Source: Orbicella franksi (taxonomy: Eukaryota). From it: DNA of 64,000 nucleotides. Where the stretch lies: assembly GCA_964199315.1 (NCBI GenBank), contig OZ116711.1, forward strand, positions 23,188,001-23,252,000, in the 5' to 3' direction. A model generated the notes under the pieces. It saw only the letters and a list, made by a program, of their open reading frames with translations. It made no database searches and was not told where the DNA came from. Position 1 is the stretch's first letter, and the number at the start of each line of letters is the position of its first letter. Shown one piece after another: positions 1 to 63,837 of the stretch. The position numbers and the translations under genes were made by a program.

Positions 1-250
1 GTGCTTATTGAGGTTTTGTGGAACCGAGATAGCTAGCTTCTCTTTACGTATAACTCATAAAGGGAAATTGCAGATTACCTAACTGTACATGGATTTGAAC
101 ATTAAAACTGACTTGCATTTTTTATGCATTCTCTAATGGATTAAGCGTTTCTTGTAGGAAGTCTTGAGTCACTCCTTAAATGACGCAGGGCTGAGATGTA
201 GATGTAAATAGGATGTTACGAGTTCAGTGAATTAGTCGAAGATTAATTTA

Positions 251-613
251 GGGAGCTTAAGCAATGTCGTCGTCGTCGCCGAGGACGACGCCTAGTAGAA
301 AATGTAGCTATATTTTACCCGCGAAATTCGCGATTGCCTAGATCTGTTCAGTATACCATGGCTGTAAAAACGTGCTTAAGCTAAATATGCAATGACGGCC
401 TTCAATTTCATATGAAAATACGAAAAATTAGCCGTCGTCGTCCGCGCTCAGACGACACGGAACTTGGTCATTTTCACGTTCTTGTCTCGCCCAGGACTGC
501 AAAGAAATGCACAAAGATTTATAACGAACGTGCACAGCTATTGTTTTACTCATTAAGTCTTTTGTTTGGTGACGTTCTCGCTGCCGTCGTCGTCGTGGTT
601 TGCTTGAGCTCCC
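251..613. mobile_element. MITE with 14-bp terminal inverted repeats
   Basis: gggagcttaagcaa ... ttgcttgagctccc (1 mismatch). A diverged homologous copy lies at about 9138-9494. Confidence 0.8.
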
Positions 614-925
614 CAAGTATAAAAGACGACGTTTTCAGCGTAACGGATCAAGTTCATACTTCCTGGTAAATATCATAATGATTTATCGATATTAACTTGT
701 TTCAGAACAAACTCAAGATATAATTTGCCAAGGTTTGCTAATACTTTCAAAAACATGTTGCTATCAAGGCTTGATTTTATGCAATTTTCAATTATTTCCA
801 GATCAAGTGTGGTCCATCAAAGAGCTTTGACATGATACCTTAATTTATGATTCTTTATAAAAGAAGTCAATTAACCCAACAGAATAGACTGCAGTAATGA
901 AAATTTACCCTTTTTCCTTTAACAG

Positions 926-3900
926 CAATTGACGGTGGCTACACTGATTGGAAAGAATCTTCTGTGTGTACTGTGACGTGTGGAGGAGGAACCCAGACAC
1001 TAACAAGAACCTGCACCAAGCCCCCGCCATCTAACGGTGGAAAAGGCTGCAGTGGCCTGGGACCAGCTAAGAAGGTTGTTCCATGCAATGAACAGGAATG
1101 CCGTAAGTTAATATTGTTTCCCTTATTGTTGTATATTTTGTCAGTTACCTGTCTGGAGATATCGACTGAAGCGAGTTAGTACAAATTTAATGTTCTTCGA
1201 CCGCTGAGGGATTCTTAGAGAGACCAACCAAAATAAATTGACGTTCAAACTCTGTTTACGCGCGCTCCTTGTCCTGACGTTAACGTGCCCATAGTAACGT
1301 CGGTATTCTTTGATCTTCTTTCAGGAATAAATTTTTGGAGAATTGAATTTAGTTTGGAGAGCATATAGACACTATAAATTGATTATAACTTTACGACTTA
1401 ACCATCAGTAACTGCAGCAAATATGAGAGAAACCCCTTAAATACTGAACGAGACATTTGCTAAAGACGATGATATGGCGACGTCGTCATCATCATCATTA
1501 TAGCCACCAACATCATCACCATCATCTCTTGTAGGAAGTCTTAAATCCCTGACGTTTACCTTAATTTAGTTTACTGTTCTTCATGAAAGAAGTCACTTAA
1601 CCAACAAAATAGAGCGCAGTAGTGAAAGATTTCTCCTTTTCCTTTTAACAGCAATTGACGGTGACTACACTGATTGGAAGGCATCTTCTGTGTGTACTGT
1701 GACGTGTGGAGGAGGAACACAGACACTAACAAGAACCTGCACCAATCCCCCGCCATCTAACGGTGGAAAGGACTGCAGTGGACTAGGACCAGCTACAAAG
1801 GATGTTTCATGCAATGAACAGGGATGCCGTAAGCTGACATTATTTCACTAACGATGCAATGCAGTACTAGTATATGCTGTAACATATAGTTCCATAACAT
1901 ATCGTTCTGTATCGATCTTCTAAGTTTATTTTCAGTCTGAATATTGAGTTGAAAATGGGTTTGCATACTATTATCACCATCAGTATTATAACAATCTTCA
2001 CAACTACCACCAGCGTCATCATCATCTTCATCATCATCATCGTCATCATCATTAGAATCCTCCACGGGCAACTTTCCCCTCGCTTGTCACCAAATTTTTC
2101 AAATGGGCAAAACTAAATGAAGTCCAAACTTTGAAATTGTATTAATTGAAAACACCGAGATATTTTTATGTTTCTTTTCATGCATTAAGACGCAATACTT
2201 TTGATATTGCAGCCGTTGACGGACGGTATTCTGATTGGTCGGCGTGCTCGGAGTGCAGTGTGACGTGTGGAGGAGGAACACAGACACTAACAAGAACCTG
2301 CACCAATCCCCCGCCATCTAACGGTGGAAAGAACTGCGATGGACCAGCCCAGAAGACAGCCCCGTGTAATGAAGTAAATTGCCGTGAGTATTATTGGAAA
2401 TAATTGGTAACACTCATTTATGACATTTAATTTCTGTGGGATGTTGAACGACATGGTCGAAGTGTCGGGAGAAGCAAGTGGGTTATATATAGCCAATGCA
2501 TTATTGAAATGGGTTTGAACCAAACGAAAAAACAGAACCATGCAATGAACAAGAATGTAGTAAGTGCTTTTTACATCAATTGCACTAGCTTTTTTTTGTT
2601 CTTACAATGAATTATTTTCATATTAAATTTTCATGAAATTTACCTCAAAAGGCTGGTTAATTTAAATTGCTTCACTTTGGGAAGAGTTATCTCCCTTTTA
2701 GAGAGTAAGAAATAGTTTTCCAGTTGATAAAATGCAAGGAAAGTAAGAGCGGGAAATTCCAAGGTTTACATTTCGGTATTTTGACTGTTGGTCATCAAAC
2801 TACTGAAAATCAACCCAATGAAAAGGTTTCTGGCAGAAAAAAAATTTATCAGGTTACAAAGAGGATCGAAAATTTGAAGTTATTATAATAAGTGTCACTC
2901 AGAAGTCCGATCTAAATAGGTTATTCTTTTGTAAATAAATCCACTTAAGTTGTTCTCGCAGTCAAGATGAAAAAGTATCCAATTTATAACGTTAACGTGG
3001 TTACTTTTCTTGCAACGTGCTCGATTTCAAATATTATTCTTTCCTTCTTTTAGCTGTTGACGGCGGCTACACTGATTGGTCGATTTCTGAGTGCAGTGTG
3101 ACGTGTGCAGGAGGAATACAGACACTCACAAGAACCTGCACCAATCCCCCGCCATCTAACGGTGGAAAGGACTGCAGCGGATTAGGTCTAGCGGAAAAGA
3201 CAATTTCTTGTAACAAACAAGAATGTCGTAAGTATTTTTTTGGAACAGTTACAGGCTCTCTTCAGTTTATCTTAATCTATTGTATCTTTTAAAATGAATG
3301 AGGACTCTCTTTTTCTTTAGCCCTTATCGATGATTACGTGTAACAGTCAACGTCTCGTTAACGATTTGTTGTACAATTGTGAACTGAAAATAGAGAAACG
3401 AGGCAGTGGGTGATTTGACTGAAGAAATATCAAGACAACGTTGGAAGGAAGAAGCATTAAATGAAGACCAAACTTTGAAATTGTATTAATTGAAAACACC
3501 GAGGTATTTTCATGTTTCTTTTCATGCATTAAGACGCAATACTTTTGATATTGCAGCCGTTGACGGACGGTATTCTGATTGGTCGGCGTGCTCGGAGTGC
3601 GGTGTGACGTGTGGAGGAGGAACACAGACACTAACAAGAACCTGCACCAATCCCCCGCCATCTAACGGTGGAAAGAACTGCGATGGACCAACCCAGAAGA
3701 CAGCCCCGTGTAATGAAGTAAATTGCCGTGAGTATTATTGGAAATAATTGGTAACACTCATTTATGACATTTAATTTCTGTGGGATGGTGAATGACATGG
3801 TCGAAGTGTCGGGAGAAGCAAGTGGGTTATATATAGCCAATGCATTATTGAAATGGGTTTAACCCACGCTTTCGTCGTCTTCTTTGGAGAGCAACTGGTT

Positions 3901-6653
3901 GCTGTTGTTATTTTTTATTAAAAAAATTCTAAATCTAAGGCAAAACTTTCAAATAGTTTTGTTGTAAAATATGGTTCGCGTCAGCGTGAGGAGCGGATAT
4001 TTTTTTGGGAATGTTTTTAGTAATAAATAAACTTGCGCAAGTAATTTTATAAGAGACGCTTCATTTTTTATACTTCAGCATATCTTGTTTAACCTTCACT
4101 TGATAACCACTGCTCTGTATGTGCATACATACTATGCTGCATTGCTCTGCATTCACACTGTATTGCACTGTTTTGCCTTGGCTTGCCCTCCACAGTACGG
4201 TGCACATTGCTTTGTTTGACTACATCTATCCTTCTTCATGTAAAGCTCTCTTAGAGAAACTAAATTTGTCTGTCCCTACGGAAGATGTTTCTCTCGTAAA
4301 CATTCAATAAGATTCTTAGGCCTGTATCACGACCGTTTTGCCTTGGCTTACCCTCCGCAGCAAGGTGCACATTGCTTTGTGTGACTACATCTATCATTCT
4401 TCATGTAAAGCTCTCTTAGAGAGACCAAATTTGTCTGTCCCTACGGAAGATGTTTCTCTCGTAAACATTCAATAAGATTCTTAGGCCAGTACTTCGACAC
4501 TGAACAATTTTAAAAATACCATTAGACAAAACGACCTTATTGTTTTCATTGAGGGCATGTGCACAAAGTGTGTTGTGTGTACGTATTTGAGGAATTTATA
4601 TACATATAGTCACAAACACTTTTATCGTGATTGTAAATACATTAATACGTTTTACGTTCTTACCTTAGAACAATTTTAGCATGTGTAAAAATTTATATCT
4701 CTTATTCATTCATTTTTATTGTTATTGTTTGTGTCCACAATTAGTTATTTAAGCTAAATACTCAGACACTTAGATAAAGTTCATTCATTCAATCGTTCAG
4801 TCATTGTATAACCACAATCACCATTACCTTTTATCGCCACAGCACCTCCTTGTACTGCAGGACTTGACATTGGGATCATTCTCGACAAATCAAACAGCGT
4901 TGGAAAAAAGAACCTGCAAAAAGCTATTGAATTCTTGAAGAAACTGGCTGGTGAGTTCAATCCTTCGCCAGAAGCTGATCACTTTGGTTTAATCACATTT
5001 CACAGCAAGGCCAACTTGGTGTTTAACTTCAACCAGTACCAGAATAAGGCTGCCCTTTTACAGAAAATAGCCGAAGAGCCGATAGACTTGGAAGGACAAA
5101 CTCGCACCGATCTGGCGCTGATAAAGGCGAAGGACGAGCTGTTTACCGAAGCAGGAGGAGACAGACCAGACAAACCAGATATCCTGTTCATTTTCACGGA
5201 TGGTAAACCAACTCATCCCAAAAAGAACCGCTTTAATTTTACAGCATTTTTTGAAGAAATTGCAAAAGATTTCAAGGTGAGTATCTGCAGTGCAGTGCAG
5301 TGCTGTGAGGTGCTGTGAGGTACAATGCTGTGCAGTGCTGTGCAGTGCTATGCAGTGCTATGCAGTGCAGTGCAGTGCTGTGAGGTGCTATACAGTGTAC
5401 TGCTGTGCAGTGCTATGTAGTGCTATGCGGTAAAGTGCTGTACAATGCAGTGCTGTGCGGTGCTGTGAGGTGCTGTGCAGTGCAATGCTATGCTGTGCAG
5501 TGCTGTGCTGTGTAGTGCGGTGCTTTGCTTTGCTTTGCTGTGCTGTGCTGTGCTGTGCTGACGGTGCTGTGCTGTGCTGTGCTGTGCTGTGCTGTGCTGT
5601 GCTGTGCGGGACAGTGCTGTACAGTGCTATTCATTACTACATCATCCATTTATCTTTCATCATCTCTTTGTGCGTCTGCCACCCAGCCTTTTTATTTCTA
5701 ATCATATATACAGCGTGCACTACAACTTTTGTCCTTTCTAACAGGCAAAGGATATTTATACAGAAGCAGTGGGGATTGGTAAAGGAATAAACTTCGAGAC
5801 TCTTCGTCAGATTGCAGGTGCTGATAACCCTGTAACACTGGTGAATGACTTTGCCAAACTCATGGAAGAGATTCCGGTTATCAAATCAAAGGCTTGTTCT
5901 GGTGAGTGGTCAGAGAGAGTTGCCGGCGATTCTGGTTTTTTTGAGCCACTTGCTGTTTGGTCCCTAAATTAAGGTCTATTTTCAAATTACACCCTGTGTT
6001 TTTTTCACTTGCGGTTACTCAAATAAGCATCTCTTTTTTTTCCCCCTTTTCCCGAGAAACACCCCTCGATTTTTCTACAGAATTAACCAGGGTTTTCTGT
6101 CCATTAATGAAAGTATTGAAATTATCCGGACCTCGATTATCCGGACTATTCGATTATCCGGACTTTTTCTCTGGTCCCAATTTTTTCATGAATATCAATT
6201 AGTTGTGATCTTGAAAACTCAAAGTCGTAAAAAGCCCAATAATCCTTTCAAAAGACTGTTGAAACAGCATATTATCCTGTGGGCTTTTCAAAATTCGCAA
6301 GTGCGACGAGACAAAGAAATATTCTGATGCGTTCAGCTGAAATCTGATTGGCTCAACATTTTAGACCTTTGTAAATACCTGAACTGAAAGTTTTTATTTG
6401 TAAATACATACAGGCTGTGTAGATTTCACAATTAAAATGATGTTTCTTTGCTGTATACCTTTTGTTTACATTTCTATCTCATTAATATTCATGTTTTCGA
6501 TTATCCGGACTCTCGATTCTCCGGACTATTTACCAAGGTCCCGACGAGTCCGGATAATCGAGGTTCGACTGTAACTTTAATGAATATGAAAAGGTGATAA
6601 GATTGCCGTTGAGTAAAAGACTCAGCTGTTTTTTATTTTGTTTTGCAGATTAA
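926..6653 (+). CDS. TSP1-repeat + C-terminal vWA protein, coadhesin-like, paralog A (5'-partial; start upstream of window)
   Basis: Five phase-1/phase-1 TSP1 exons (926-1102, 1652-1828, 2213-2383, 3054-3227, 3557-3727; pattern DGGYTDW..[28 protein letters not shown]..C..C). vWA exons 4843-5276 ([28 protein letters not shown]) and 5745-5901. Terminal exon 6649-6653 (G|AT TAA). All junctions are GT-AG and in phase. No transmembrane segment. Confidence 0.9.
2114..3860 (+). repeat. Recent 403-bp duplication containing a TSP1 exon (2114-2516 and 3458-3860)
   Basis: Offset 1344 bp, with about 7 substitutions counted by eye, two of them in the exon. Confidence 0.9.
2517..2559 (+). pseudogene. Remnant 3' end of a deleted TSP1 exon
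   Basis: Reads [14 protein letters not shown] followed by the same phase-1 donor (A|gtaagt) as intact TSP1 exons. In-frame TGA at 2505-2507 and no usable acceptor. Confidence 0.75.
4170..4487 (+). repeat. Two-copy tandem duplication, period 165 bp
   Basis: gttttgccttggct...aataagattcttaggcc starts at 4170 and again at 4335. Confidence 0.9.
5286..5625. repeat. Degenerate pentamer satellite (TGCAG/TGCTG)n in the vWA intron
   Basis: About 340 bp of TGCAG, TGCTG and TGAGG variants starting 9 nt after the 5276 donor. Confidence 0.92.
6121..6571. mobile_element. Tc1/mariner-type MITE, left end truncated
   Basis: Repeated cgattatccggac units on the left and inverted gtccggataatcgaggttcgactg|ta at the right end. 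Confidence 0.65.
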
Positions 6654-8908
6654 AGAAGTTTGTCGTTCAAAACCCAATGTTTGAGATGAACGGCGTAAAC
6701 AAGATTCGGGCTTGTTTGTTTGTTTCTTATTTCAGCTTCTTTGTAGAGAATAGTATGACAGTAAATATATCTTAAAACTTTGAAAAATACACAATTTAAG
6801 TAATAGGTCAAAATGACTAGGTATTTTATTTCGGTGTTTTTTCTGGTGCTGATTTGAGCTCAAAGACGTCTGCATCATATTGAGCAGAATATAACCACTT
6901 GACTACATCTTTAGTCTAGACCATGATAAAATTTCTTAATATTGATATAATTTTGGATCAGGGATAAAATGACAAAAACCTAATGTTAAAAGGTAGAAGT
7001 GATGTCAGTTTATATCATAACTGAGGTTTATCAGAACCCTGTGCACCAATAAACGACAGGTTTAGCAAGTGCTTTGTGTTAAATAAATTACTGTAAGTTG
7101 CCTTGCAACATGGATTTACTGCTGGTTTTATAAAAAGTTTCCGTTTTATTTGCAATACGTGTTGTTTATTTACAATGTCCTCAGTTACACTGTTATACCC
7201 CGTATAACGTAAATCCACATGGCTAGATAGCAAATTATTATACTTACTATTTGCCCTTCATCGTTGCGTCTTAGTAGATTTCTAGTCGGAATCTCGATAT
7301 TTCCGGCCGTGCGACATTTTCGGGCGAAAGTTTACAACAAGAGTTATCACTCGAAAATATCGCGTCGTCCCGACTGGCTGCCCCTGGGATTCGGAGAATG
7401 AATCTGCTCTGTAATTCACCAAAGTGTTCTCGCTTGAGTTGACATTTAGCATTTATATCCCATGTCCCCAGTTTAGTGGCGCACGCTACGCACGGCATAC
7501 TGATAACAGCCACCCTTACTTTTGTTGTTGTGAGTACAAACTTTTATCCACAAAAACATGCCTGCTGCGCTGCCGGATTTTGTCTCGCTCCTTATTTTCG
7601 TACGGGAAAGATAAGTAGACTAAGCATTTGTGCCTTAAACTCTTCAACCGTATGAATATTTTGCCTCAGGTGATTCACATGAAGTTTCACCCAGCCCTAT
7701 AATAGACCACAGGAATTTTGATAGAGCTTCCATCACGAAAATTGTCTTCTCTAATAATTATCATTGTTGCTTCGTGCGACTGCTGGGGCAGTAAACACGC
7801 AATCTCTCCGACACTTTGATGGCAACTTATGCCCTCATTGATAGCTATTGATGTGAGCTGATGTACTCCTCAAAGAAAACAGCCCTCCTCTTTCCCACAC
7901 AGTTCACATGCCACACTGTTATACATACTAATTTAGGCCACAGCTGCAGTTTTCCTGTTACTACATCTATCAGAATGGAAAATCTGCGAAGTGTTTCACA
8001 CCCAACAGCGTGAGAAAATCGTCCGTTTTTGAAACAAGGTTCACACATAAAGGAGACCTCCCCCGCGTTTTCAGCTATGTTTTTTAAACTCCCACGCACG
8101 TTTTTACCCGCGGGGAACATTTCTAAAGAAAATTACTGAACCAAGAAGCAAGAAGATCAAGGTTAAGTGTATTTCAAAATTAACATTTAGCTAGCTATTT
8201 CCTCCCGTTAGGTGTACCGCAACATCACGGAAATTATTTCCGGCCAGCAGGAACAGAGCACATCATTTGATTGCTTTTCAGTCAGTTCTTTACTAGCACA
8301 CGACGAACCTTGAGCAAACTGCTGCTAAACTTCTGCAGGATACTGGATATTCCTCTTTGCTAGTGTTCCTGTTAAGTTTTGGTTCACTAAAGACTGATTA
8401 ACTTTTCATTATTCTTCAATCTCAGCTCGTTAGAATTCACTTCATTCGCCGTAAATCACAGCAAGAACTCTTCGTTCCAAGCCGATGCAGACCACTAGCT
8501 TTAGATTGTTTTGATGGCTCTTGGCTCATACCCAGCAAAAACCTTCACGAATGCTCGAATGCATCATTCTTTGTTCTTAAAAGTCTTTTGCCAACTTAAC
8601 AAGGTTTGTCAAATTAGAAGATTTTATTCATAGGTCTCGAACTGCTATAAAAGGCTGATATATATGCTTCATTATTCCTCCACAGTGATGCTCCTTGTGC
8701 AGCGCATATTCTAAATCTAATATAGTTTGTTTGTTTGCAATTACAGTTCAATGTAAAGAAATGCAAAATAATCAATAAAAACGGGCCAGTTAATTATAAG
8801 TACATGCTTTCATCATCATACATTCTCCAGTACCATCACGTTCACTAACATCTCCACGCCTTTTTTAACTTTATCTTGCAGGTTTGGACTTGACACGTAA
8901 GAGACGCT

Positions 8909-11900
8909 ATGCTAGCTTTGATCGTCAGTATGATTTTAAGCCTGACTTTAGGTAAGAAATGCATATAGGAATATTTAATTTTTTTAAGAGGAGTGCTAGA
9001 GGAACCACACGCTATGAGTAATGTTATTGACTGATTTAATTTCTCCTCAGTCTGATAACCTGAAACTTCGAGAGAGTCCAAGCGAGTTACTTCAATTATG
9101 ATTCACCGACGACACTACCGTCTTGAAGACATGGATGGGGAGCAACGACGACGGCGACGCCGAGGACGACTCCTTGTCAAAAATGAATTTATATTTTACC
9201 ACCAAAATTCGAAATTGTCTTGTTCAGTACACCAATGGCTCTAGAAACGTGCTCCGGCTAAACATTCAATGACAGTGTTCAAATTCAAATGGAAATACGA
9301 AAAATTAGCCTTCGACGTTCGCGTTCCTCAGACTTCGCAGAACTCTACGTCATCTAACGTTGTTGTTTTGCAGAGGACGGCGAAGAAATGTGCAAAGATT
9401 TATATCGCACGCGCACAACCATTGTTTTGCTCACTAATCCTTTTGCTTGGTGACGTTCTCATTGACATCGTCGTCGTTGTTTGCTTAAGCTCACTCTTAG
9501 CTTAATTGCTCAAATTTGTTGCTACTATATGAAACTCGAATGTAAGGAAACTTTCTCTACATCATAAGCATAAGTCAAATTTAACGCTACCAGAAATATA
9601 ATAAGGTAGCAATATTTTCCTCATACAGCAACTGAAGGTGGCTACACTGATTGGTCAGCATGTTCTGAGTGCAGTTTGGCGTGTGGAGGAGGAACACAGA
9701 CATTTATAAGAACCTGTGTGCCATTGGACGGTGAGGGCTGCAGTGAACTGGAACCAACTGTGAAGACAGAGTCGTGCAACGAGCAAGACTGCCGTGAGTT
9801 TTCTTTACACCTTTCGTATTGTTTGTTTTTCTTTTAGTTCTTCGACCTGATCAAAAAATAGAAAAGCTCTGAGAGATCACCCGTTAGTTATTACGCCATA
9901 TCTCGGGGTATGACGTCATACGTTTCACTGAATCTCCCAAGCCATGAAGAACATGGAATAAACTATTCAAACAGAAATAAGTTGCGCCAAGGGTGGTAGG
10001 ACAACCTGTCAATAGTATAATTACCATCAATAAAATTAAATCATGTTCAGAATTATTCCCCATTAATTTTTGGGAGAAATTCTTACTTCATGATTTTCAT
10101 TTGCTGTCACGACTGAAAGAAACATATATTATATTACTTCCAACAAAGATGATAAAAAATAGCTTAGGAGAAGATTTGTTATAATTTAGACATATAATAT
10201 CTCTGATGACGGCCAATGTCATAGGCATATAAAAATCTCAATTATTTCTTCGTTTTTCTTGTAGACTTGTAGCTAGTTCCTATAATTTAATTCTAGTCTC
10301 ACCCCTGATAGAGCTGTACTACTTTTATGAGAAGATAAGCGTACCAAACTTCTCAATATTTTTGCAGCTATTGACGGTGGTTACACTGATTGGTCGATTT
10401 CTGAGTGCAGTGTGACGTGTGGAGGAGGAATACAGACACTCACAAGAACCTGCACCAATCCCTCGCCCTCTAACGGTGGAAAGAATTGCAGTGGACTGGG
10501 ACCATCAGAAGAGGAAGTCTCGTGTAACGATCAAGAATGTCGTAAGCTATGTATTCTCAATGACGGTTATATTGCTTCCCTGGGTTGGGTAATATATAAC
10601 AAGCGCTGTTCTATTCCCATTACAGCTATCAACGGAGGTTATTCTGATTGGTTGGAATGTACTGAATGCAATGTGACGTGTGGAGAAGGAACAAAGATAC
10701 TAACAAGAACCTGCACCAATCCCCCGCCTGCTAACGGTGGAAAGGACTGCAGTGGACTGGGGCCAGCGGTAAAGAAAGACTCCTGCAACGAACAGGAATG
10801 CCGTGAGTGTTTGTTCATAACAATTATAATTGAGTTCGAATTGACATGCTGTTTTCCTTTCTACAAAAGATTTCAAATAATTGATGTTTTTTGATGTATT
10901 TATTGATTTATTGATGGAAAATAGATTAAGCCAAAGAATAAGTCACAAGTTTTTTCCTTGATAACATATTGGGATCAAAACAAAATTTAAGTGTGAAGGT
11001 TCATAGACTTGAAGCAAAATGCAACTTCCGTAAGAATGTCTTTTAACAAAATAAGAAAATATCGGGGAGTACTAAAGTGGAATTGTTTATTGTACGCTGA
11101 CAGATGAGGCTATCAGCGAGGGGCAAGAGATGTATAACTCATAATTTGTGGTAAAGTTAACGTGAAGCTCTCTCCTAGGGCACTAAGAATATCAATCCAA
11201 CATGTATGTGACTTATATTTACCATTTATTAAACAATTTCCTCTTTGATCATACAGCACCTTCATGTAAAGCAGGGCTTGACATTGCATTAGTTGTCGAC
11301 AAGTCTAGCAGTATTAGCAAAAAAAACCTAAAGAAAGCTGCCGAGTTCTTGGAGGATCTAGTAGAAAAATTCAACCCTGGACCAGATGAAGATCACTTCG
11401 GGTTGATCACTTTTAGCAGGAAGGCCACCACGGCGTTCACCTTCGCCGATTCAGAGTACCACGACAAGGAAGCCCTCAGGCAGGGAATAGCCAGCCGACT
11501 AGTTGAGCCAGGAAGAGGAACTCGTACCGACCTCGCACTGAGGGCAGCAAATGAACTGTTTACAGAGGCTGGGGGAGACAGAGCAGACAAACCAGATCTC
11601 ATGATTGTGCTTACGGATGGAAATCCAAATCACCTCAGAAAGACGACTTTCGAAGAGTTTGCCAAGGAAATAGCGAAAAGTTTTGAGGTTAGTATCCCTA
11701 GATCGTTGGTCGTTTATATGTGACCGTCAGTCAATTCCTGGGTAAGGATGCAAAGCGTTCCTCTCGATAGTAAAGTTTGGAGATCATTTTTTTGAAAATT
11801 GAATTCATCTTTGATCCAAACTTGACAAATTTTACTCCAAATCAGTTCGTTTGGCAAGTTTAATATGTTAAAACACTCCTAGTATCTCGTCATTTATTTC

Positions 11901-12636
11901 TTCATCGAACTTTTATAGGAGAATATGCGTCTACAACAACATGACGGTTTTCATGTGTTTTCATGTTCGTCGTCATCATCATCTTAGTCGTCATCATCAT
12001 CATCATTATTATTGTGTAGGTCGTACTACATTTGTTCTCTTTTGACAGGCAAAAGATATTTACATAGTAGCAGTGGGGATTGGTAAACGAATCAATGAAG
12101 AGAATCTGCGGTTGATCGCGGGAGTTTTTGACGATGAAGAAGATACAGACCGAGTGGTCCAGGTGGAGAACTTTGATAAACTACAAACGAAGATTGATGA
12201 AATCAAAGAATCCGCTTGTTCAGGTAAGTCTAAAACCTAAAACTTGTCAACAACATAAGTCGCCTATTTTCAGCTGCTAACTCGGACTGTTTAAATACAA
12301 TACATTACGGAACAACGAAATATTGGGAAAGAAACGACTTCACCTTTCAATTACAGTCTTCTCCTTCCTTAGCCATGATCTTTTATAATGTAAGCTATTA
12401 TTTTTTAATTTTTTTTTTATGTTGGGTTAGATGAAAGTTATATTTTATTTTCATAAAAGAAATGTGCCTTGCCTTGATGTAGGCCCAAAACAAAAGTAAC
12501 TTTAAAAAAGAGGTGCGCAATTCTAAATATCTTCATTTTGCGACGTAACGTTTCTTTGTTTTTCTCTTTCAAGAGTGACAAATATTCTTGTCTTAAAATC
12601 AAGCAAAGCAATTTTCTTTCTCTTTTTACAGATTGA
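8909..12636 (+). CDS. Secreted protein: signal peptide + 3 TSP1 repeats + vWA, coadhesin-like, paralog B
   Basis: Signal-peptide exon 8909-8951 (MLALIVSMILSLTL, G|gtaag, in-frame TGA upstream). TSP1 exons 9629-9793, 10368-10541, 10626-10802. vWA exons 11257-11687 (DKSSS MIDAS, LTDG) and 12049-12223. Terminal exon 12632-12636 (G|AT TGA), the same layout as paralog A. An extra micro-exon after the signal exon cannot be excluded. Confidence 0.87.
9138..9494. mobile_element. Diverged copy of the MITE at 251-613
   Basis: Collinear similarity (gccgaggacgac, aatacgaaaaattagcc, ggtgacgttctc, ttgcttaagctc end). Confidence 0.75.
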
Positions 12637-29260: not shown

Positions 29261-30934
29261 TTATAGAATGATGCAGAATTTTGACTTGGGTTGCGTCTTA
29301 GCTCCTCTTTCGTTGCTTTCAGTCTTGTGTGGTCGAGAATCCACCATCAGGTGGTTATTGTTGCTGTAAGTGCTGAGTGTAGACGTTTTCCGGATAAGGT
29401 CTAATTTCTTTCTCGTAATTCGATGAAGGACTACCCTGTAGGTTCCTGTTATACTGTCCCTTGAATCTCTACATTTCGCAAAATGTTCCGACGAAATTCC
29501 AAGTTCTTTCATCGTGTTCAAGGCATCTCGTTCGTCTTCAGACAACTCCGTACTCTCCGTACCGGAAGGACAGAGACTGTACTTTGTATCAGGCCGTGGA
29601 AACACTTCGCTTTCAAGCCAAGCGGAGTGTTTGATCTCCTCCATTGTAAACCTATCTGTAGGAACAGGTCTCAGAATGTTCCGTAAAAGGAACCGACAGC
29701 GATCGGTCAAAAACTCTGGCAAATAATAAGTTCCATCAAGAATACACTTCTTTAGCTTGCCTACTGTCTCGGCACGGAATGGCATTACGCCAGTGACCAT
29801 GAAATAAAGTAGTATTCCTAAAGCCCAAATATCCACATACACTCCGATGTAGTGTTCATCCTTAAACAATTCCGGGGCGGCATATGGTGGTGAACCACAA
29901 AAAGTATTAAGTGTGCTGTCCTTAGTTGACAATGTACTAAACCCGAAATCTCCAACCTTCACTAAATTCGGACCCGCAATGAACACATTCTCTGCTTTGA
30001 GGTCGCGATGAATTATGTTGTTGTCATGCTGAAATTCAGGAAATGAAACATCATAAGCAACGTTGCAAGTAAAATCGACCTTCATTATTTTACATTGTTA
30101 AAATCTGTATAGTGTACCAGTTGTTCAATCCCCAAACAAGAACGATCGGTCTTAAGACGTTCTAGCTTACAAAATGAAAGCTTACCTTACGTCTTAACGC
30201 TAAATACTTATTTAGCAGGAAACGATGTCGAGTAGCCATACACTCTGTTGGCGCTCTAAAGCTTGTTACATCAAGTGTTGAATGCTTTTATATCATTAAG
30301 GAAAAAAATCCCGTTTTGCCTACTTACCATATGTTCTACTGCGGATGCTACTTGGGCATAAATTCGACGAGCTGTTCGCTCGTGCAATTTTCCCTCGTTC
30401 GAAATTCGAGCGAACAATTCGCCACCAGGCGCGTATTCCATCACGATGTGCAGCTTGGAAAGCGTTTCGATCACTTCATAAAGTCTGATTATATTGGGAT
30501 GATGGAGTTTCTCCATCGAAGAAATTTCCCTAGATAGCAATCGTTGCGTTTTCTGATCCAACTTTGTCTTGTCCAAGATCTTGATAGCAACTTTGTCTGC
30601 AAGTAAAGGTAGCATGTAAGTTCACGCTAAGTGACGCAGGCCGCCATGCAATAATTCTCGATCGCCTAACATTCTTACCTCTTGTAAGTGAATGTATTCC
30701 CATTTTAACCTGGCAAAAGTTCCCACTACCCAATTCTCCTCGAATGCGATAAAATCCAATTCGTTTGCCGAGAGTTATTTCCTTGATATAGCGTTCGTCG
30801 TGAGATAAATCGTACGTCAAGCGTTCGAAAGGTGTCAGACTCTTTTCTCGATGTTGTTGTTCGATGTGTTTGCGTTCTGCTTCTCCTTCACGTTCCCGTG
30901 AGGAAGAATCAGCCATGTTGTTAGACACCGTCAT
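29261..30934 (-). CDS. NIM1K: Serine/threonine kinase NIM1 (AMPK-related), 430 aa (424 aa from second ATG at 30916)
   Basis: Exons 30679-30934, 30328-30596, 29261-30028. Motifs: GKRIGFYRIRGELGSGNF, KVAIKILDKTKLDQKTQRLLSREISSMEKLHHPNIIRLYEV, HRDLKAENV, DFGFST, LNTFCGSPPYAAPE. C-terminal CaaX-type CIIL. Confidence 0.95.
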
Positions 30935-42423: not shown

Positions 42424-43749
42424 ATGTCTGCTCCAGAAGTGCTCGATGAGATTTTAGCCCTAAAATCAATTTTTTGTAGCCCAGGAGAATTTCACTTCAT
42501 AAACCCGTCCTGTTTAGAGGCACTTGAAGCATCACGCGGACCAATTTCGTTCAAGATTGGCGTTAAATGTACAGCAGACCAATGGTCGAACGATGCCGCG
42601 AAATCTCCCTTTTTGTCTGTGGTGGAAATGACGATGGTCCTTCCACTTGACTATCCACAAACTTTGCCAGAAATATCACTCTCCTGTGCGGACATCTCAA
42701 AGAAAGGATTATCTTCTTTGCGAAACAAACTGAAGGAGTATGTAGAAAATATACACAGTTCGAATAGTGAGCCAATGATTATGAATATGGCGATGTGGCT
42801 GCAAGAGAATGCGTCATTATTTTTCGATAAACCAGAATTAGGCAACACATTTAATTGTAGTTCCTCGGATGATTCTATTCTTTTACTTAAGTTGGACCAC
42901 ATGAGGAATAAAACTCGTTACATCAAAACCTTAACTCGCTGGATTGACGAGCTACACTTGGATGGAAGACTCTTCTTTGCCAATTACTTGATCTTTATTT
43001 TGTTAACTGGAGAAACTAGCAGTATCAGAGAATATTTACGGCGACACAAGACTTGCAATATTGACGTTGACTCGTGTAGGAAACCATGCAAGGAAAAAAT
43101 GATAAATGTTCTGGTGCAAGAGGAGGCTCCAAATGATTTAAGGTAAATCAAAACGAAAATAGACAATTAACACATATGTACCTTAAGTTGTCAACATAGA
43201 TCTTATTTCTCCACCCCATATTTATATTCCACTAAGAATGATAATAATCAGTCCATTTCAAGCAGTCAGGTGATTAGCCTAGGCTCAATTACCAGTTGCT
43301 GTTTTGGAAAGAAGCCACTCAAGAGAGCAGCAGGAATCTAGCCTAGTTAGGTCTAGCAAGGTGATGAGAATTTAACTACAACTAGAATAATATCAAGGGA
43401 CACAAAGGGCCTTCTTTTCAAAATATTTAATTTTTTGAAATTGGTGGTAAACTTATAAGGAAAACATCATGATCCCTGTTTGGAGTTGAGAGAAGAGAAT
43501 CGTTTCTAGCACAATTGATTGAAACTACCTTGTGGGGATTATCTGTGATTTTTTTTTTATCATTTTTACCAATTTTGTAGGATTTGTGGCTTTGAGGAAG
43601 TGGAATGTAAAACCCCTGCAGAACTTAAGGAAAGCTTCACAGAGCTGAATCTTGAGCATTTATTCAAACAGCACATCACACCATTACTCTCATTACTTCA
43701 ACCACAGAGGGATGCTCTCCAGCCAAAACCTTCACAGAAAAATGACTAA
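42424..43749 (+). CDS. RWDD3: RWD-domain protein 3 (RSUME)-like, 295 aa
   Basis: Exons 42424-43142 and 43581-43749 (AG|G phase-2 join, TAA at 43747-43749). RWD YPxxxP motif (DYPQTLP) and a C-terminal block LDHMRNKTRY...DVDSCRKPCKEKMINVL typical of RWDD3. Confidence 0.88.
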
Positions 43750-58291: not shown

Positions 58292-60712
58292 ACTGAAATG
58301 AACACTGAACTGCTATTTATTATAATTCTAAAGTCTACTACACACAGTAGTGTGGTCTCAATCGAACTCGTTAAGGGTAGTAAGAGCAATTTCATGGTTC
58401 CCTTGTGGAACTTAGCGTTAAGAAATTTGTGGGAACTTATATTTGGGGATTCCTAGAAGATTTATCTGCTACTTGCAGTAATGTCAGTGCTATCAGATGA
58501 TTGTACTGCTGTACTTGATGCCAGAGTTGTAGACAAACCGCAAGGTGCGCTTACATTATATCAGTTTTGTGTGGAAAGATGAGATTAAAGTGCCAAATAG
58601 TGAACTTGTTTTCTAAGCAATTTCAAGGTAAAAGGAGACTTAACACCTCTGGTATCAAGAAAAAGTTCTTTATTAAATGTAATGAAATCTATGAGTGTTA
58701 AGGATGAAATCTTATTTTGTAAAACGTGGAAAACAATTATTTATTTTACATCATAGAGTTTTGCAGGATAGGTTTTACGCCTAATGCAGTCATTTGTGAC
58801 AAGGAATTGTAAGTTATTGTAATTTATGTCAAGCATGTTGACATGATGGTTTTCATGTTATAATGCTATTAATGCTTATTAAACAGCAACAACTTAGAAC
58901 CAGATTCTTAATGTACTGCTGATTCATTTTCTATTCAGGGATGTTTTATGCATACAGTATTATAGCGAATAGTACATGTGAACGTGAGTTGCTTTGTGAG
59001 TTTCTTTGACGCGTTTGTGAAAAGAAAAATGCGTTACGTGTTGCGATATGCAGAAAATATTAGTTTCAAACTGTCAAATATTGTCTTTCACGGCACAGAG
59101 TCTCAAATATGTTAATTTAGTTATTCTTATGACGGTCTGGCTTTTCTCAGTTTCTCTCGTTAAGCTGGGGCATTTGTTTGCATTCAAATAGGAAAACCAT
59201 CATGGCGGCTGTAGTGAGTACAGCCAATTCACAAGGTAATTCTCCATACACACATACGTATCGTGATCTTAGTTTGCTTCATTCGATTCTTTAAAGTGGT
59301 TTTGCTTATGAAACTTGTAATGTCGTTTTCAGACAGAAGAGGAAAGAAAAAAGGCGGGAAAATGCGTTCGTGGTAGAACACTACTTGATACTTGATTGGT
59401 TAAGCGGGAGGATCAACTCTGATTGGTCCATTCACAGGATACTAGTTGCGTCTTTGTTTTACTATACGATTCTCTTTTTTCCATTTCGGTGAATTTTAAG
59501 ACGCTCATTTTTTTATTATTTATGTTTAACGAAAGGGCAATTTATATACTTTCTCTTTAAACTGCTTTTTTAAGGTTTTTTTTTCCCGAATCCACACGTT
59601 AGTATCCGCTATTATTGGTTTGGATTTTATAATAAGGCTAACTGTGCAGGTATTTTTTTTTCTGGTTGAAATTGTACTAAATCGGATGTGCTTTCTGATT
59701 ATGCCAGTTCTTTATTTATCTCACATTTAAGTTAATGCACCTTATGTAAAATTCGAGGAAACTGAACGTAACTTCTATTTAGTGACTAAGTAAGTTTTCA
59801 AACGTTCCTTACCTATTAGCAGTACTTATCAATAGTTTAAGGCTTATTCGAGCCGTTTATCTGATAAGAAAGCATGGTCTGCTATGCTTAAGATTTTGAC
59901 AATAATTTACAGTTGAATTTACTCAGTCGGAAGAAAATTAACGCTTCTTTCCGAGACATCGTGTTCTGTTGTGTTTGGTTTGTAAGTTTACTTGTTGTTG
60001 AGTAAAGAAAGTAAAACTGAAAGTGACAAATAGCCAAGGTGTTATGTTCATTTCCTTCCAAACATATGTCACTGTATTCCTTTGTAACTACTTTACGGTT
60101 TTCTTGATGTGACGAATATTCAAGATCTCGGTATTTGGGGTGTGATTACAAAACATGACCTAAAACTTTGGACGTTAAAAGTAATGATACGTTTTATTTT
60201 CTACAGCGAATTTTGTTTCAGTAGCAAAGCTTGTTGGGATTGTGGGCGATTCTTCGTGTTGGTAGGTCTATAAATAACAAAGGGTTTAAATCTTAATTAG
60301 GGCTGGCAAAGATGTTATTCTGAACCGTTTTCTTTTAATTATTACTTGTGTTTCGCTTTTCAGAAACATAGAAAAATAGGGATGACAATATAACAGCATG
60401 TAGCGTTTCGTTTGTTCAAACTAAACTCATTAACATTGGTAAAACCCTAGTCTATGATTGGTTGGTTTTAGCGATTGCACCTGTTGACTTGATATCATGT
60501 ATTTACATACTCACACAACACGCAGGAACACGTTTCACATCTACATCTCATTTATCAAACGCCATGTAAATTTAATGTAACCATGCTATCGCTATAACAA
60601 CGTTTCGTCTCTTAAAAACATTCATGTTTGGCTTACGTGGGTGAATCTGTCGGATTTGCGTTGGGTAGTTGTTATTGACTGTATTTTTCGACTGTCGTTT
60701 TTAGCCACGAAC

Positions 60713-61366
60713 ATGAGTGCTCAAGTTTCTGCCCATTCGAGAAACTCCTCACTCGGTGGAGGACCTTCAATGATTGGTATGATTAGGGCCCGAAAACTCG
60801 CCGTTAAAATGAAAAAGCGGGCGCAGTTTTTAGTGGCCGATAGGAAGCGAAGAGAAAACGCAGGTAAGACGGCTGTGATTCACTGGGATTTCCCTCGAAA
60901 TTTCCGTCGAGATGAGCCACCAACAAGGTTATTAGTCCCTGGAGGAAAATCCCCAACGAGCTCACGATCTCCAAGTGCATCATCGCGTTATGGCTACGTG
61001 AATGTGAGTCAACCGCCCAAAAACACATACCGCATGGAACCTCTAAGCCGCTTTTCCGAGCCAAAAGTCAAAGAGGTTATTGAAGATGTTCTGGATCAGA
61101 ACCTTAATGGTCACACTTACGAAGCAGTGTTCTGCCAGGAAATGAGTAAAAAACTCTCTGATATTATCAAACAACGGGTCAAGTTCTTGGGATTTTCACG
61201 GTACAAATTCATCTGTATTGTACACATGGGACAGGTTAATAATCAAGGAATGCGGATAGGAAGTCGCTGCTTATGGGATCAGAAATTTGACAATGTTGCG
61301 GAAGGATATTTCAGAAACGGTGACTTATTTGCAGTCGCCACTGTGTTCGGTTTGTATTGCGAGTAG
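60713..61366 (+). CDS. Tctex1-domain dynein light chain (TCTEX1D1/DYNLT4-5-like) with basic N-terminal extension, 217 aa
   Basis: Uninterrupted ORF from ATG 60713, with an acceptor-like ttttag at 60699-60704 just upstream. C-terminal Tctex1 domain NTYRMEP...RYKFICIVHMGQ...SRCLWD...FAVATVFGLYCE. Confidence 0.88.
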   Translation: MSAQVSAHSRNSSLGGGPSMIGMIRARKLAVKMKKRAQFLVADRKRRENAGKTAVIHWDFPRNFRRDEPPTRLLVPGGKSPTSSRSPSASSRYGYVNVSQPPKNTYRMEPLSRFSEPKVKEVIEDVLDQNLNGHTYEAVFCQEMSKKLSDIIKQRVKFLGFSRYKFICIVHMGQVNNQGMRIGSRCLWDQKFDNVAEGYFRNGDLFAVATVFGLYCE

Positions 61367-62309: not shown

Positions 62310-63011
62310 TTACTCCACAAAAACAGCAAATATCGACGCTTGTGCAAAAAGGTGATCGTTTCCGTACGACTCCTGCGCGAAATTATCAAAATGAGCATTC
62401 CATAAGCATCTGCTGGTGATATGAACACCTTGACCGAGCTGCTGACCAATCCAAACTACGCAAACTAACTTATACCTTTCCGCAGGCGCTTCTGCCTTCA
62501 CTTTCCTTTTAATCTCCTCGCTTATCTCAACAGATAACCTCTTGCTTTCTTCTGCAATGTACGACTTGCTTCTCAAGTGCCCTTCCAACACGTCACGAAT
62601 GATCACGCCCGCTTTTCCAGTCAAGAAGAAATTGTCGGGTTTCATTTTATATGTGTTTTCCATCATCGCTTTTTCCCCAAGATACAGAGAAGAGTTGTCG
62701 TCGACGGAATTTGCCGCAGCTAAATTAGAACTTGTAACCTTTGCAAGTGGCACTTCTGCGTGGTAATTCGGGATCACGCCTGAATTCTGACCATGGCCTA
62801 CTTTCCGTCCAACAGCCGGTGGAAAAGCGCGGTTAGCAAGCAATACAGTTCGAGCAACGGAGGCAAATTTACCTTTGATCTTATCCTTTTCGCCGGCTTG
62901 TTTTAAATCGTTGCTAGGTTCTCTTTGTCCTTTTTCTTGCGCGGTTAAAAAGAAAGTTGTTTTCTTTTGAGAAGTCTTCGACTGCAGTGAGCTCTTTCTT
63001 GAAGGTTCCAT
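62310..63011 (-). CDS. Second Tctex1-domain dynein light chain, 233 aa, convergent with the first
   Basis: First ATG at 63011 (the track start at 63089 is a TTG). Domain MENTYKMKP...RYKLVCVVWIGQ...SRCLWNAHFDN...FAQASIFAVFVE. Probable 5'UTR exon donor near 63558. Confidence 0.88.
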   Translation of the reverse strand: MEPSRKSSLQSKTSQKKTTFFLTAQEKGQREPSNDLKQAGEKDKIKGKFASVARTVLLANRAFPPAVGRKVGHGQNSGVIPNYHAEVPLAKVTSSNLAAANSVDDNSSLYLGEKAMMENTYKMKPDNFFLTGKAGVIIRDVLEGHLRSKSYIAEESKRLSVEISEEIKRKVKAEAPAERYKLVCVVWIGQQLGQGVHITSRCLWNAHFDNFAQESYGNDHLFAQASIFAVFVE

Positions 63012-63837
63012 TATAAAACAACCAGAGACAGAAAAATCAAAACCATTGTCTGTTTTTGGCAAACTTTGAGGTTTGAATACTGGTTCCAATTCGTGTGATT
63101 TATTATGTAAGCTACCTTTACTAAACAGCTTCTTTTGAACTCTTAAGTAGCTTCAATCAGCTCCCTTGAGAAAACTACAGAAAAATTGTTCATTATATAA
63201 TGCAAATCGTTTAAAAAGTTTGCATGTAAATTAACGAGAAAACAACGAAGCTGTTATGTTGTTTACCATTAGAGTTTGAGAATAATTGACTTATGTATTC
63301 GATACTAAAAACACATCAATGGTGCTTAATATAAACTGGCATTCAGTTCAAAGTGCGCCAATCAGTAATTGAGAGATGCATGTCCCAATTAAACGCTACG
63401 CTGCACAGAACTTAACAATGTTGGCATCGAACGATAGATCACAGTTTAGTTTCTACTGTATTTCTCAATTTGACGAATCCGTAAACAGCTAGCGGTTCGT
63501 TTCGAAGTCGTTCATATTTTATTCTGTTGAGGTGTTGATGGAGTGACTACTAGACTTACCACAAGTCGACCTTTTCGTAATCCTTGACTTACTAACCTCC
63601 CTCGAGCGAGGCGAGAGGGTAATCTTCGCGCGAAGAAGTCGAGAGAAACTAACAATGGAAATATTATTGGAAAGGACTTTTAGAAAGTATAAGTGACCAC
63701 CTGTACAGAAAGAAAGAAACAGACATTTACGCTAAACTAAGGTAATGGGGTCAGTTTCAATTCCAACAGAACGAAGAGTTTTGCTGTGAATCTTTGTTCG
63801 TTCATTAACACCCGATGTATCTGATGTTTTTTTTAAG

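Follow-up and report, generated by a model that had tools for sequence, protein, structure and literature searches.

Why should exons whose two ends are strongly unlike share near-identical middles? The question is raised by TSP1 exons in a 64,000-nt stretch of the Orbicella franksi genome (contig OZ116711.1, positions 23,188,001 to 23,252,000; here the window). The region belongs to a coral gene cluster of TSP1-vWA paralogs, each encoding a signal peptide, an array of three to five TSP1 repeats, and one MIDAS-bearing vWA domain. Two of these genes lie in tandem at 1 to 12.7 kb of the window, gene A with five TSP1 exons and a vWA domain and gene B with a signal peptide, three TSP1 exons, and a vWA domain; at least four further family copies are found at other places in the same coral genome. 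Every TSP1 repeat is a single symmetric phase-1/1 exon, and the exons belong to old types (K and T1 to T4) whose 5′ and 3′ thirds are strongly unlike. Boundaries and translation bear out an earlier note on this DNA in that all eight TSP1 exons are phase 1/1, being AG/GT bounded with lengths divisible by 3. Its expectation that such exons can be gained and lost holds within the family, where repeat number is 3, 4, or 5 depending on the paralog and gene A contains both a duplicated exon block and a relic fragment; repeat number and composition vary among species as well as among paralogs. Copy number, repeat number, and chimeric genes vary between close lineages.

All features described here are on the forward (+) strand of the window. 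The TSP1 exons of gene A are A1 (926-1102, K type, identical in amino acids to P1), A2 (1652-1828, K type; Pfam TSP_1 E = 6.6e-7), A3 (2213-2383, T3 type; E = 1.9e-12), A4 (3054-3227, T2 type, a copy of C2), and A5 (3557-3727, T3 type, a second copy of C3). They are followed by vWA exon 1 (4843-5276, with the MIDAS residues DKSNS...T...D; Pfam VWA E = 2.3e-27), vWA exon 2 (5745-5901, ending in phase 1), and, in the gene model, a 5-nt terminal coding exon (6649-6653) that supplies the final D and the stop. Metatranscriptome contigs L043 to L046 confirm the splicing of vWA exon 1, and spliced contigs whose best match is gene A connect a T3 exon, both vWA exons, and the terminal exon, so that the transcripts of gene A end after a single vWA. 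Contig L043 is identical to the second vWA exon over 159/159 nt and aligns to 6648-7303 at 99.2%, extending the 3′ UTR to at least 7303. A MITE-like insertion at 6126-6570 in gene A is absent from paralogs C and D. Gene B begins with a signal-peptide exon (8909-8951, MLALIVSMILSLTL, ending in phase 1), followed by B1 (9629-9793, T1 type, with a core four codons shorter; Pfam TSP_1 E = 4e-6), B2 (10368-10541, T2 type), and B3 (10626-10802, T4 type). Two vWA exons (11257-11687 and 12049-12223; Pfam VWA E = 2.2e-26) and a terminal exon (12632-12636) complete a spliced model that encodes an open 389-residue protein.

The five exons tested against Pfam PF00090 score 27.3 to 47.6 bits (cut-off, 21.6), and each TSP1 exon in the window other than B1 and A4 has six cysteines and the motif C(S/T/N)VTCG; B1 reads CSLACG and A4 reads CSVTCA. 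In the translations the WxxWxxW ladder is absent, with one tryptophan per repeat, in Y(T/S)DW; these repeats are a reduced-ladder variant. Both vWA domains match PF00092 (E = 2e-27 and 2e-26) and carry the DxSxS...T...D signature as DKSNS or DKSSS, TRTD, and TDG. Their first exons are about half identical, as had been judged by eye (54% of amino acids, pS 0.60, dS about 1.2). The A and B proteins both end in ACSD directly after the vWA domain and have no membrane anchor.

The shared blocks are present as first described. A 73-nt stretch is exactly identical in A2 (1698-1770) and A3 (2259-2331) and occurs again in the fifth exon, A5 (3603-3675). Exons A4 and B2 align without gaps and differ at offsets 2, 10, 13, 54, 95, 100, and beyond, and therefore match over 81 nt (3068-3148 versus 10382-10462) with one mismatch, at 3108. 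A GENECONV-style permutation over 103 polymorphic sites gave P = 1e-5 for the 35-site run over which A2 and A3 agree (4.5e-4 after correction for 45 pairs) and, before correction, P = 3e-5 for A2-A4 and 7e-5 for A3-A4, values that permutation alone cannot assign to a converted rather than a slowly evolving block. The A4-B2 pair was not significant in this strict-run test (P = 0.15); divided at the 3′ edge of the core, a split chosen post hoc, it differs at 6/116 versus 17/58 positions (Fisher P = 2e-5).

Silent sites divide the exons in the same way. Across the 72-nt core (24 residues), pS between most exon types is 0 to 0.15, whereas flank pS is 0.5 to 0.76, near saturation; Fisher P for this contrast ranges from 1e-5 to 5e-3 for most type pairs, with about 20 synonymous sites per segment in these short exons and with exon pairs that are not independent. 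Flank pS matches the old vWA divergence among genes A, B, and P (pS 0.56 to 0.64, dS 1.0 to 1.4), and introns of different exon types do not align. The flank tree separates the exon types, most of which include an orthologue from another species (SH-aLRT 94 to 99). The core tree collapses to a star in which 0/16 branches are supported, species do not group, and the cores of other assemblies fall among the rest. Exchange boundaries can be read from T2 exons. Copies from the B and C genes of three assemblies are intermixed across the 5′ flank and core, 2 to 11/116 apart, and split across the 3′ flank into two deep groups 15 to 20/58 apart; B2 itself has a C2-like 5′ flank and core and a B-specific 3′ flank. 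In another coral, L041, the C-like and B-like genes share a 3.1-kb segment (91% identical) whose end lies immediately beyond the T2 core, at the core's 3′ edge. The patchy identity reflects non-allelic recombination (gene conversion or unequal exchange), as originally suggested, and neither codon-level constraint nor chance.

Gene conversion between repeat exons, together with later rearrangements, is the explanation of the locus that we consider probable. We infer that non-allelic homologous recombination, acting within and between genes, transferred the central 72 nt between exons as short gene-conversion tracts. The core, as the longest unbroken identity, would seed exchange and have its identity refreshed by each exchange, and the diverged flanks and unalignable introns would halt the tracts, with the consequence that boundaries would pile up at the core edges and leave mosaic exons. 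Most homogenisation probably took place before the three compared coral lineages split or at about that time, with fewer later events. The nearest core of another exon type differs at 0 to 5/72 positions versus 3 to 5/72 for the orthologue; for T3 and T2 it is the closer of the two, and for B2 and B3 it is level with the orthologue or no nearer. Since the core tree has no species clustering, species-specific, ongoing homogenisation is unsupported. The exact identity of the A2, A3, and A5 cores and one homoplasy (ata/ctc), common to C2 of the window genome and the B2 group and absent from oC2 and qC2, hint at events after the split.

Coarser events on the modular exons (unit duplications, multi-kb exchanges, and illegitimate joins in introns) would then build new genes, and gene A, called paralog A in the earlier note, is not one old paralog but a young chimera in which a P-type 5′ half, with A1 and A2, appears to have been joined to a C-type 3′ half, with A3, the relic, A4, A5, and the vWA domain, and with a duplicated 1.35-kb block. 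The A2/A3 pair consequently compares exons from two different parent genes. A segmental duplicate in inverted orientation makes up positions 1-2052; its counterpart is the 5′ part of paralog P, located on the minus strand of G000:C14 at about 23.1465-23.1485 Mb (blastn 97.7% over 2,055 bp in one HSP), and the homology to P stops within a (CAT)n microsatellite. Junction J1 (2053-2113) follows, with the breakpoint into C-type sequence at 2113/2114. The segments 2114-2521 and 2516-4333 are 98% identical to paralog C. The first of them, which holds A3 and flanking intron as a copy of exon C3, is 98.3% identical to C14mid 7391-7797 and 97.8% identical to window positions 3458-3866. At junction J2 (2516-2562), where the microhomology is t..aacc, the C14mid alignment jumps from about 7797 to 6449, marking the 1.35-kb internal tandem duplication; the same interval is a relic of a T1-type TSP1 exon, its last ~44 nt, with the donor site kept and the acceptor lacking. 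Short-read contigs are interrupted at 2516 and at the cores, and a structural difference between organism labels may exist at 2114.

Does this process serve diversification? A programmed or selected system would use the core as a handle for reshuffling flanks, so that a secreted recognition protein would take many forms among individuals or cells. Several observations fit: exchange boundaries do fall at core edges, repeat number and composition differ among paralogs and species, the possible difference at 2114 could be structural variation of this kind, vWA dN/dS is about 1 to 2 among the youngest copies (small counts), and TSR proteins are implicated in cnidarian symbiont uptake (PMC5446238). 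The flank types, however, are few and old and have conserved orthologues in other assemblies, dN/dS in the flanks falls well under 1 (pN 0.1 to 0.3 versus pS 0.5 to 0.76), no donor cassette arrays were seen, and the analysis found no evidence of a programmed or individual-specific process. Exchange had been said to diversify the protein by varying the flanks, a claim that we do not uphold, as the types are ancient, each with its own orthologue and near-saturated silent sites. Being old and common to several species, they were not created by the conversion process, whose visible effect is a homogenised core. Nor is a constant core with variable flanks the rule: the P-like gene of another coral (L042) has the reverse pattern, with homogenised 5′ flanks (1 to 3/44) and cores that differ at 7 to 13/72. 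We therefore regard programmed or selected diversification as unlikely, and think it similarly doubtful that the core is a standing recombination handle through which TSR exons trade their outer thirds, 5′ or 3′, leaving coral populations with a wide range of flank combinations and repeat numbers in secreted TSR-vWA proteins recognising microbes or symbionts. If it were, one visible allele would be the J1 chimera, which seems to occur with certain organism labels and to give way to a different continuation with others.

Pure constraint, in which selection on RNA or DNA (splicing enhancers, codon preference, or RNA structure) keeps the core alike and recombination plays no part, would account for the great similarity of the core in the other assemblies and for orthologue core pS (0.10 to 0.17) at about half of flank pS (0.20 to 0.25), a difference that is not significant. 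We find this reading very improbable, as it is contradicted by exon P3 and by orthologue rates. P3 serves as an internal control: it keeps 24/24 core residues with six silent changes, and its core pS (0.30 to 0.45) about equals its flank pS. A check of unlinked TSP1 genes for an equally identical core did not refute conversion, finding the same residues in other codons; in arrays on contigs C5 and C6 of the same genome, 15 to 19/24 core residues are common, with different codons at 4 to 13 of them. In positional orthologues from two other coral assemblies the core differs at 3 to 12/72 positions and the flanks at 4 to 14/100, with three-point branch lengths alike for both, and the branch leading to the L047 orthologue of T3 carries about nine core changes, matching the rate in its flanks. 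Because core and flanks of the orthologues change at about the same rate, the silent sites of the core are under no special constraint, though some extra constraint on the core may exist; the variable L042 cores also speak against the purely selective reading.

Still less credible is a recent origin of all repeats from one exon whose ends then diverged under positive selection. Recent copies do exist (A3/A5/C3, A1/P1, A2/P2, and the tandem 620- to 650-bp units in L042). Set against this are near-saturated silent sites in the flanks, introns that cannot be aligned between types, and flank types that predate the lineage split, as each has its own orthologue in another assembly; flank pS and the orthologous flank clades contradict the reading. 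Least credible is a misjoin of P and C that made gene A, and hence the A2/A3 adjacency, an assembly artefact: the region is repeat rich and short-read contigs do break within it, but the A blocks, instead of being identical to P and C, have diverged from each by 2%, J1 consists of 61 nt of unique sequence (all six sampled words of 2046-2130 occur in 14 public runs from at least eight studies), the MITE-like insertion distinguishes gene A from C and D, and transcripts match A-specific variants.

Conversion followed by rearrangement can be placed beside several known systems. Among coral proteins, coadhesin (TSP-1 and VWA dcp) likewise pairs successive TSP1 repeats with vWA; it has three vWA and two F5/F8 type C domains and is regarded by its authors as a lineage-specific product of domain shuffling (PMC4890752). 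Compared by description, the genes here differ in having one vWA each (possibly two if upstream gene U belongs to A), and a Pfam scan limited to 10 ORFs (118 to 274 aa) from 13 to 64 kb gave no F5/F8C match. Hydractinia rhamnospondin (cited in PMC5446238) is also a secreted cnidarian protein with a TSR array but has a rhamnose-binding lectin domain where the genes here end in vWA. Apicomplexan TRAP/MIC2, too, are secreted adhesins that combine a MIDAS vWA with TSP1 repeats, though TRAP runs from vWA through TSR to a transmembrane helix and cytoplasmic tail, whereas here the TSRs precede the vWA and there is no membrane anchor. Candidate roles for coral TSR and TSR-vWA proteins lie in the skeletal matrix and in symbiont uptake, and lineage-variable copy and repeat numbers, with short-read breaks at cores, make such loci matter for annotation and comparative expression studies.

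Under Patthy's rule, symmetric phase-1 modules are shuffled as exons in extracellular proteins. The locus conforms, with one TSP1 module per phase-1/1 exon, duplicated, deleted, and recombined without loss of frame, and with gene A a fusion through introns. Unlike the ancient shuffling usually inferred, these events are recent (about 2% divergence) with both junctions readable, the 61-nt unique stretch and the relic half-exon making this a case caught in the act. As in gene conversion and concerted evolution elsewhere (PMC3924837; KRTAP1, bioRxiv 10.1101/282418), short tracts of near identity lie in much older surroundings, homogenisation includes silent sites, and tracts end where similarity falls; tract length exceeds expectation in three pairs, and silent homogenisation is confined to the tract. 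The unit here, unlike in classic concerted evolution, is the middle third of a 171- to 177-nt exon, across distinct types in several genes, and because homogenisation is largely old and not species specific, the signature of paralogs closer than orthologues is weak. On present evidence the locus is a clear and new instance of a process already known rather than a novel diversity-generating system; with gene conversion below the exon scale, duplicated exon units, and a recent gene fusion in one cluster, it is a well-resolved case, with readable breakpoints, of how modular extracellular proteins get built and rebuilt in an early-branching animal.

Two tandem genes in the first 12.7 kb of the window, genes A and B, combine TSP1 repeats (TSRs) with a vWA domain. 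The spliced model of gene B is complete, with a signal peptide (MLALIVSMILSLTL), three TSRs, and a vWA domain in 389 residues with the C-terminal sequence ACSD; that of gene A has five TSRs and a vWA domain and likewise ends in ACSD, and no first exon of gene A was found within the window. Pfam identified TSP_1 in the five exons tested and VWA in downstream exons. All eight TSP1 exons (A1 to A5, B1 to B3) are phase 1/1, as proposed in the earlier note, and each is bounded by AG and GT; we set the boundaries of A5 (3557-3727), B1 (9629-9793), and B3 (10626-10802) in this analysis. The 73-nt identity previously reported between A2 (1652-1828) and A3 (2213-2383) is exact (1698-1770 and 2259-2331), and the same block occurs again in the fifth exon, A5 (3603-3675). 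The block described in A4 (3054-3227) and B2 (10368-10541) was also recovered, with 3068-3148 matching 10382-10462 at all but one position, and the two whole exons align without gaps.

We identified relatives of these genes by searching the 497-Mb coral genome with exon A2 and then mapping domains. Gene P, about 40 kb upstream on the minus strand, has four TSRs and a vWA domain only 62% identical to that of gene A; gene C, about 24 kb upstream, has three TSRs and a vWA domain 93% identical to it. Two further genes on contig C11, Da and Db, have three TSRs each and do not differ from one another in TSP1 exons or in vWA coding sequence; contigs C5 and C6 carry TSP1 arrays that are more distant. 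The C11 copies (L034 at about 1.697 Mb, L033 at about 1.846 Mb) are about 149 kb apart with vWA pS = pN = 0; either the segment was duplicated very recently, or the assembly contains this stretch twice. The fourth TSP1 exon of gene P, P4 (L031 9320-9496, minus strand), has TAA where the acceptor AG is expected; another acceptor may be used, or the exon may be skipped. Between the vWA of gene A (4843-5901) and the C11 copies (L033 8348-9337), pS is 0.024 and pN 0.050 (dN/dS about 2), and dN/dS between gene C and the C11 copies is about 1; counts are small in both comparisons, and the values suggest that the youngest vWA copies are under relaxed or positive selection. These young copies also form a three-way mosaic (window 2516-9386 against C, L032/L037, and Da, L033/L038): over the TSR part, identity among the three is about 97 to 99%, with A slightly nearest C, while from about 4500 on gene A is nearer the C11 copy (96 to 99%) than C (94 to 97%). 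A profile search with the vWA exon matched mostly giant multi-vWA proteins.

Grouped by their flanks (the 5′ and 3′ thirds on either side of a central 72-nt core), the TSP1 exons fall into type K (A1, A2, P1, P2, and P4), T1 (B1 and C1), T2 (A4, C2, and B2), T3 (A3, A5, and C3), and T4 (B3). We placed P3 with K, though it is K-like in the 5′ flank only and its flanks overall group with the repeats of L042, a locus in another coral assembly. Several TSR introns carry (CAT)n tracts, with microsatellite stretches also at 1475-1533, 1984-2072, and 11959-12026, and a long (GTGCT/GTGCAGTGCT)n microsatellite takes up the intron that separates the two vWA exons (5286-5640); this tract occupies the same site in other corals, where the P0052 ORF reads through it. 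Elsewhere in the window, the genes are unrelated to this family (29261-30085, minus; 42424-43146, plus; 60641-61366, plus; 62310-63089, minus), comprising a protein kinase domain, an RWD domain, and two Tctex-1 family ORFs, and none of 10 ORFs scanned there has a TSP1 or F5/F8C domain.

With the core defined as 24 codons, most pairs of exon types differ far more at synonymous sites in the flanks (pS 0.5 to 0.76) than in the core (pS 0 to 0.15; Fisher P = 1e-5 to 5e-3). Flank pS is on par with the old vWA divergence among A, B, and P (pS 0.56 to 0.64, dS 1.0 to 1.4), and introns beside different exon types do not align. A GENECONV-style permutation over 103 polymorphic sites gave P values of 1e-5 (A2-A3), 3e-5 (A2-A4), and 7e-5 (A3-A4), all of which hold after correction for 45 pairs. 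Permutation alone fits a slowly evolving block as well as a converted one, and we therefore added three controls. Exon P3 retains 24/24 core residues yet carries 6 silent changes, and its core pS (0.30 to 0.45) equals its flank pS. The earlier note held that the same core identity in unlinked TSP1 genes would point to pure constraint; instead, the C5 and C6 arrays encode 15 to 19 of the 24 core residues, with different codons at 4 to 13 of those, and the outcome does not refute recombination. Finally, we compared orthologous loci from three other coral assemblies (L041, L042, and L047), with introns roughly 74 to 84% identical to ours. Positional orthologues differ at 3 to 12 of 72 core sites and 4 to 14 of 100 flank sites, with three-point branch lengths alike in core and flank (for T3, core 2, 3, and 9 versus flanks 5, 4, and 9), and the silent sites of the core thus appear to evolve at a roughly ordinary rate.

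Between different exon types, flanks are 3 to 4 times deeper than the species split, whereas cores are about as near as orthologues. In the flank tree the types separate, most with an orthologue from another species (SH-aLRT 94 to 99), whereas the core tree is a star with no support. The simplest reading is that cores have been homogenized across types by non-allelic gene conversion, with a core coalescence that would fall at about the time when the compared lineages split, or somewhat earlier. The case for conversion events after that split is thin: A2, A3, and A5 have exactly identical cores, and a single homoplasy (ata/ctc) is found in our C2 and B2 and in oB2 of another assembly, with neither oC2 nor qC2 carrying it, but cores do not group by species in the core tree.

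The A4-B2 pair was not significant in a strict-run permutation (P = 0.15). Across three assemblies, the 5′ flank plus core of T2 exons intermixes B-gene and C-gene copies, 2 to 11 of 116 sites apart, with oB2 differing from our C2 at 2/116 and from our B2 at 6/116; the T2 3′ flank falls into two deep groups 15 to 20 of 58 sites apart. At L041, C-like and B-like genes have in common a 3.1-kb segment, 91% identical, that holds the first TSR exon and intron and ends just past the core of the T2 exon. Together with the 3′-flank split, this end point indicates that exchange boundaries recur at the 3′ edge of the core, as would fit tracts that start in the identical core and stop at the diverged flank.

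On its block structure, gene A is a young chimera. Window positions 1-2052 (A1 and A2) are one inverted block, 97.7% identical to the 5′ part of P; the homology stops in a (CAT)n microsatellite and is followed by 61 nt of unique sequence (2053-2113; junction J1, breakpoint 2113/2114), which has no second copy within the gene cluster. Positions 2114-2521 are 98.3% identical to C3 plus its flanks, and at about 2516 (junction J2) the sequence switches back, via the microhomology t..aacc, into the last 44 nt of C1, a relic that keeps its donor site without an acceptor. Downstream of the relic come C2 (as A4), C3 (as A5), and then the vWA exons. A1 and A2 are thus copies of P1 and P2, A4 of C2, and both A3 and A5 of C3, so that the A2/A3 pair singled out in the earlier note derives from two different parent genes.

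A misassembly could produce such a structure, and DNA contigs break off both at 2516 and wherever the core is repeated, leaving J2 unbridged by them. Against misassembly, each block differs by about 2% from its source and is not identical to it, and all six 31-mers sampled from 2046-2130 are present in 14 public runs, which come from at least 8 studies. The last intron of gene A also carries a MITE-like insertion absent from paralogs C and D, and spliced metatranscriptome contigs fit gene A best (vWA2 exon, 159/159 identical; 3′UTR, 99.2%). These contigs confirm the joins of the T3 exon, vWA1, vWA2, and the terminal exon; they begin at the repeated core and therefore cover exons from that point on, not those upstream. 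The 50-aa A2/A3 junction peptide, used as a query, gave one-sided matches only (coverage ≤54%). The MITE-like element is 445 bp long (6126-6570; terminal inverted repeats 6127-6152 and 6542-6567), with 58 genome matches, counting itself, full copies, and halves, at 88 to 99% identity. Contigs in public runs X6 and X14, labeled organism B and organism C, match the window to 2114 and then diverge, with a 30-nt continuation found neither in this genome nor in the paralog regions, and runs labeled organism B contain only 4/6 of the J1 words. These observations hint that the gene A chimera is not universal and may be missing in those taxa.

Genes C and Da, and also a vWA-only gene, U, are each preceded by the signal-peptide exon of the family (MESLKVVFVIILGLSS). 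A search between the last exon of U and A1, including window positions 1-925, found no such exon, and the same layout is repeated in L042. Gene U (G000:C14:23184438-23187981) has a last vWA exon that is phase 1 at its end, 24 nt before the window start. Given this phase and the lack of a signal-peptide exon before A1, U and A may be a single vWA-TSR5-vWA gene, and U′ and P, and the L042 locus, may likewise be single vWA-TSRn-vWA genes. In a search for U transcripts, every match was an unspliced genomic ORF.

Gene content also varies among assemblies. C-like genes have three TSRs in each of the three assemblies carrying them, though the one in L041 (7621-8971) looks decayed: its first repeat has Arg in place of a Cys within the CSVTCG motif, and its third repeat is frameshifted in the core. 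Next after C, L041 has a B-like gene with three TSRs, and L047 has a gene that combines one B1-like and one P4-like exon with a P-like vWA. Our genome adds the five-TSR chimera A. The proposal that this locus diversifies its product by keeping the core constant and varying the flanks was not supported: the flank types are old, and flank pN (0.1 to 0.3) is well under flank pS. The L042 P-like gene shows the reverse pattern, its four repeats being 620- to 650-bp tandem units, introns included, with 5′ flanks 1 to 3 of 44 sites apart and cores 7 to 13 of 72 apart. As read from these genomes, recombination is seen to homogenize and re-assort existing modules, and flank diversity does not appear to be its product. 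One polyA RNA raw-read run had 0 reads on 900-6000, and the contigs of a run labeled "RNA" cover introns and have no splice joints.

A coral protein with similar domain types is coadhesin, the Acropora "TSP-1 and VWA" skeletal-matrix protein (PMC4890752); its architecture is different, and we rejected it as the identity of these genes because the domain set differs. TRAP-like adhesins have a membrane anchor, unlike the coral TSR-vWA proteins. Our literature search found no paper on gene conversion of TSR exons. The process itself is ordinary non-allelic gene conversion together with exon shuffling of phase-1 modules, and this locus is a clean case of a known process, its value lying mainly in the readable fusion junctions and sub-exon tract boundaries.
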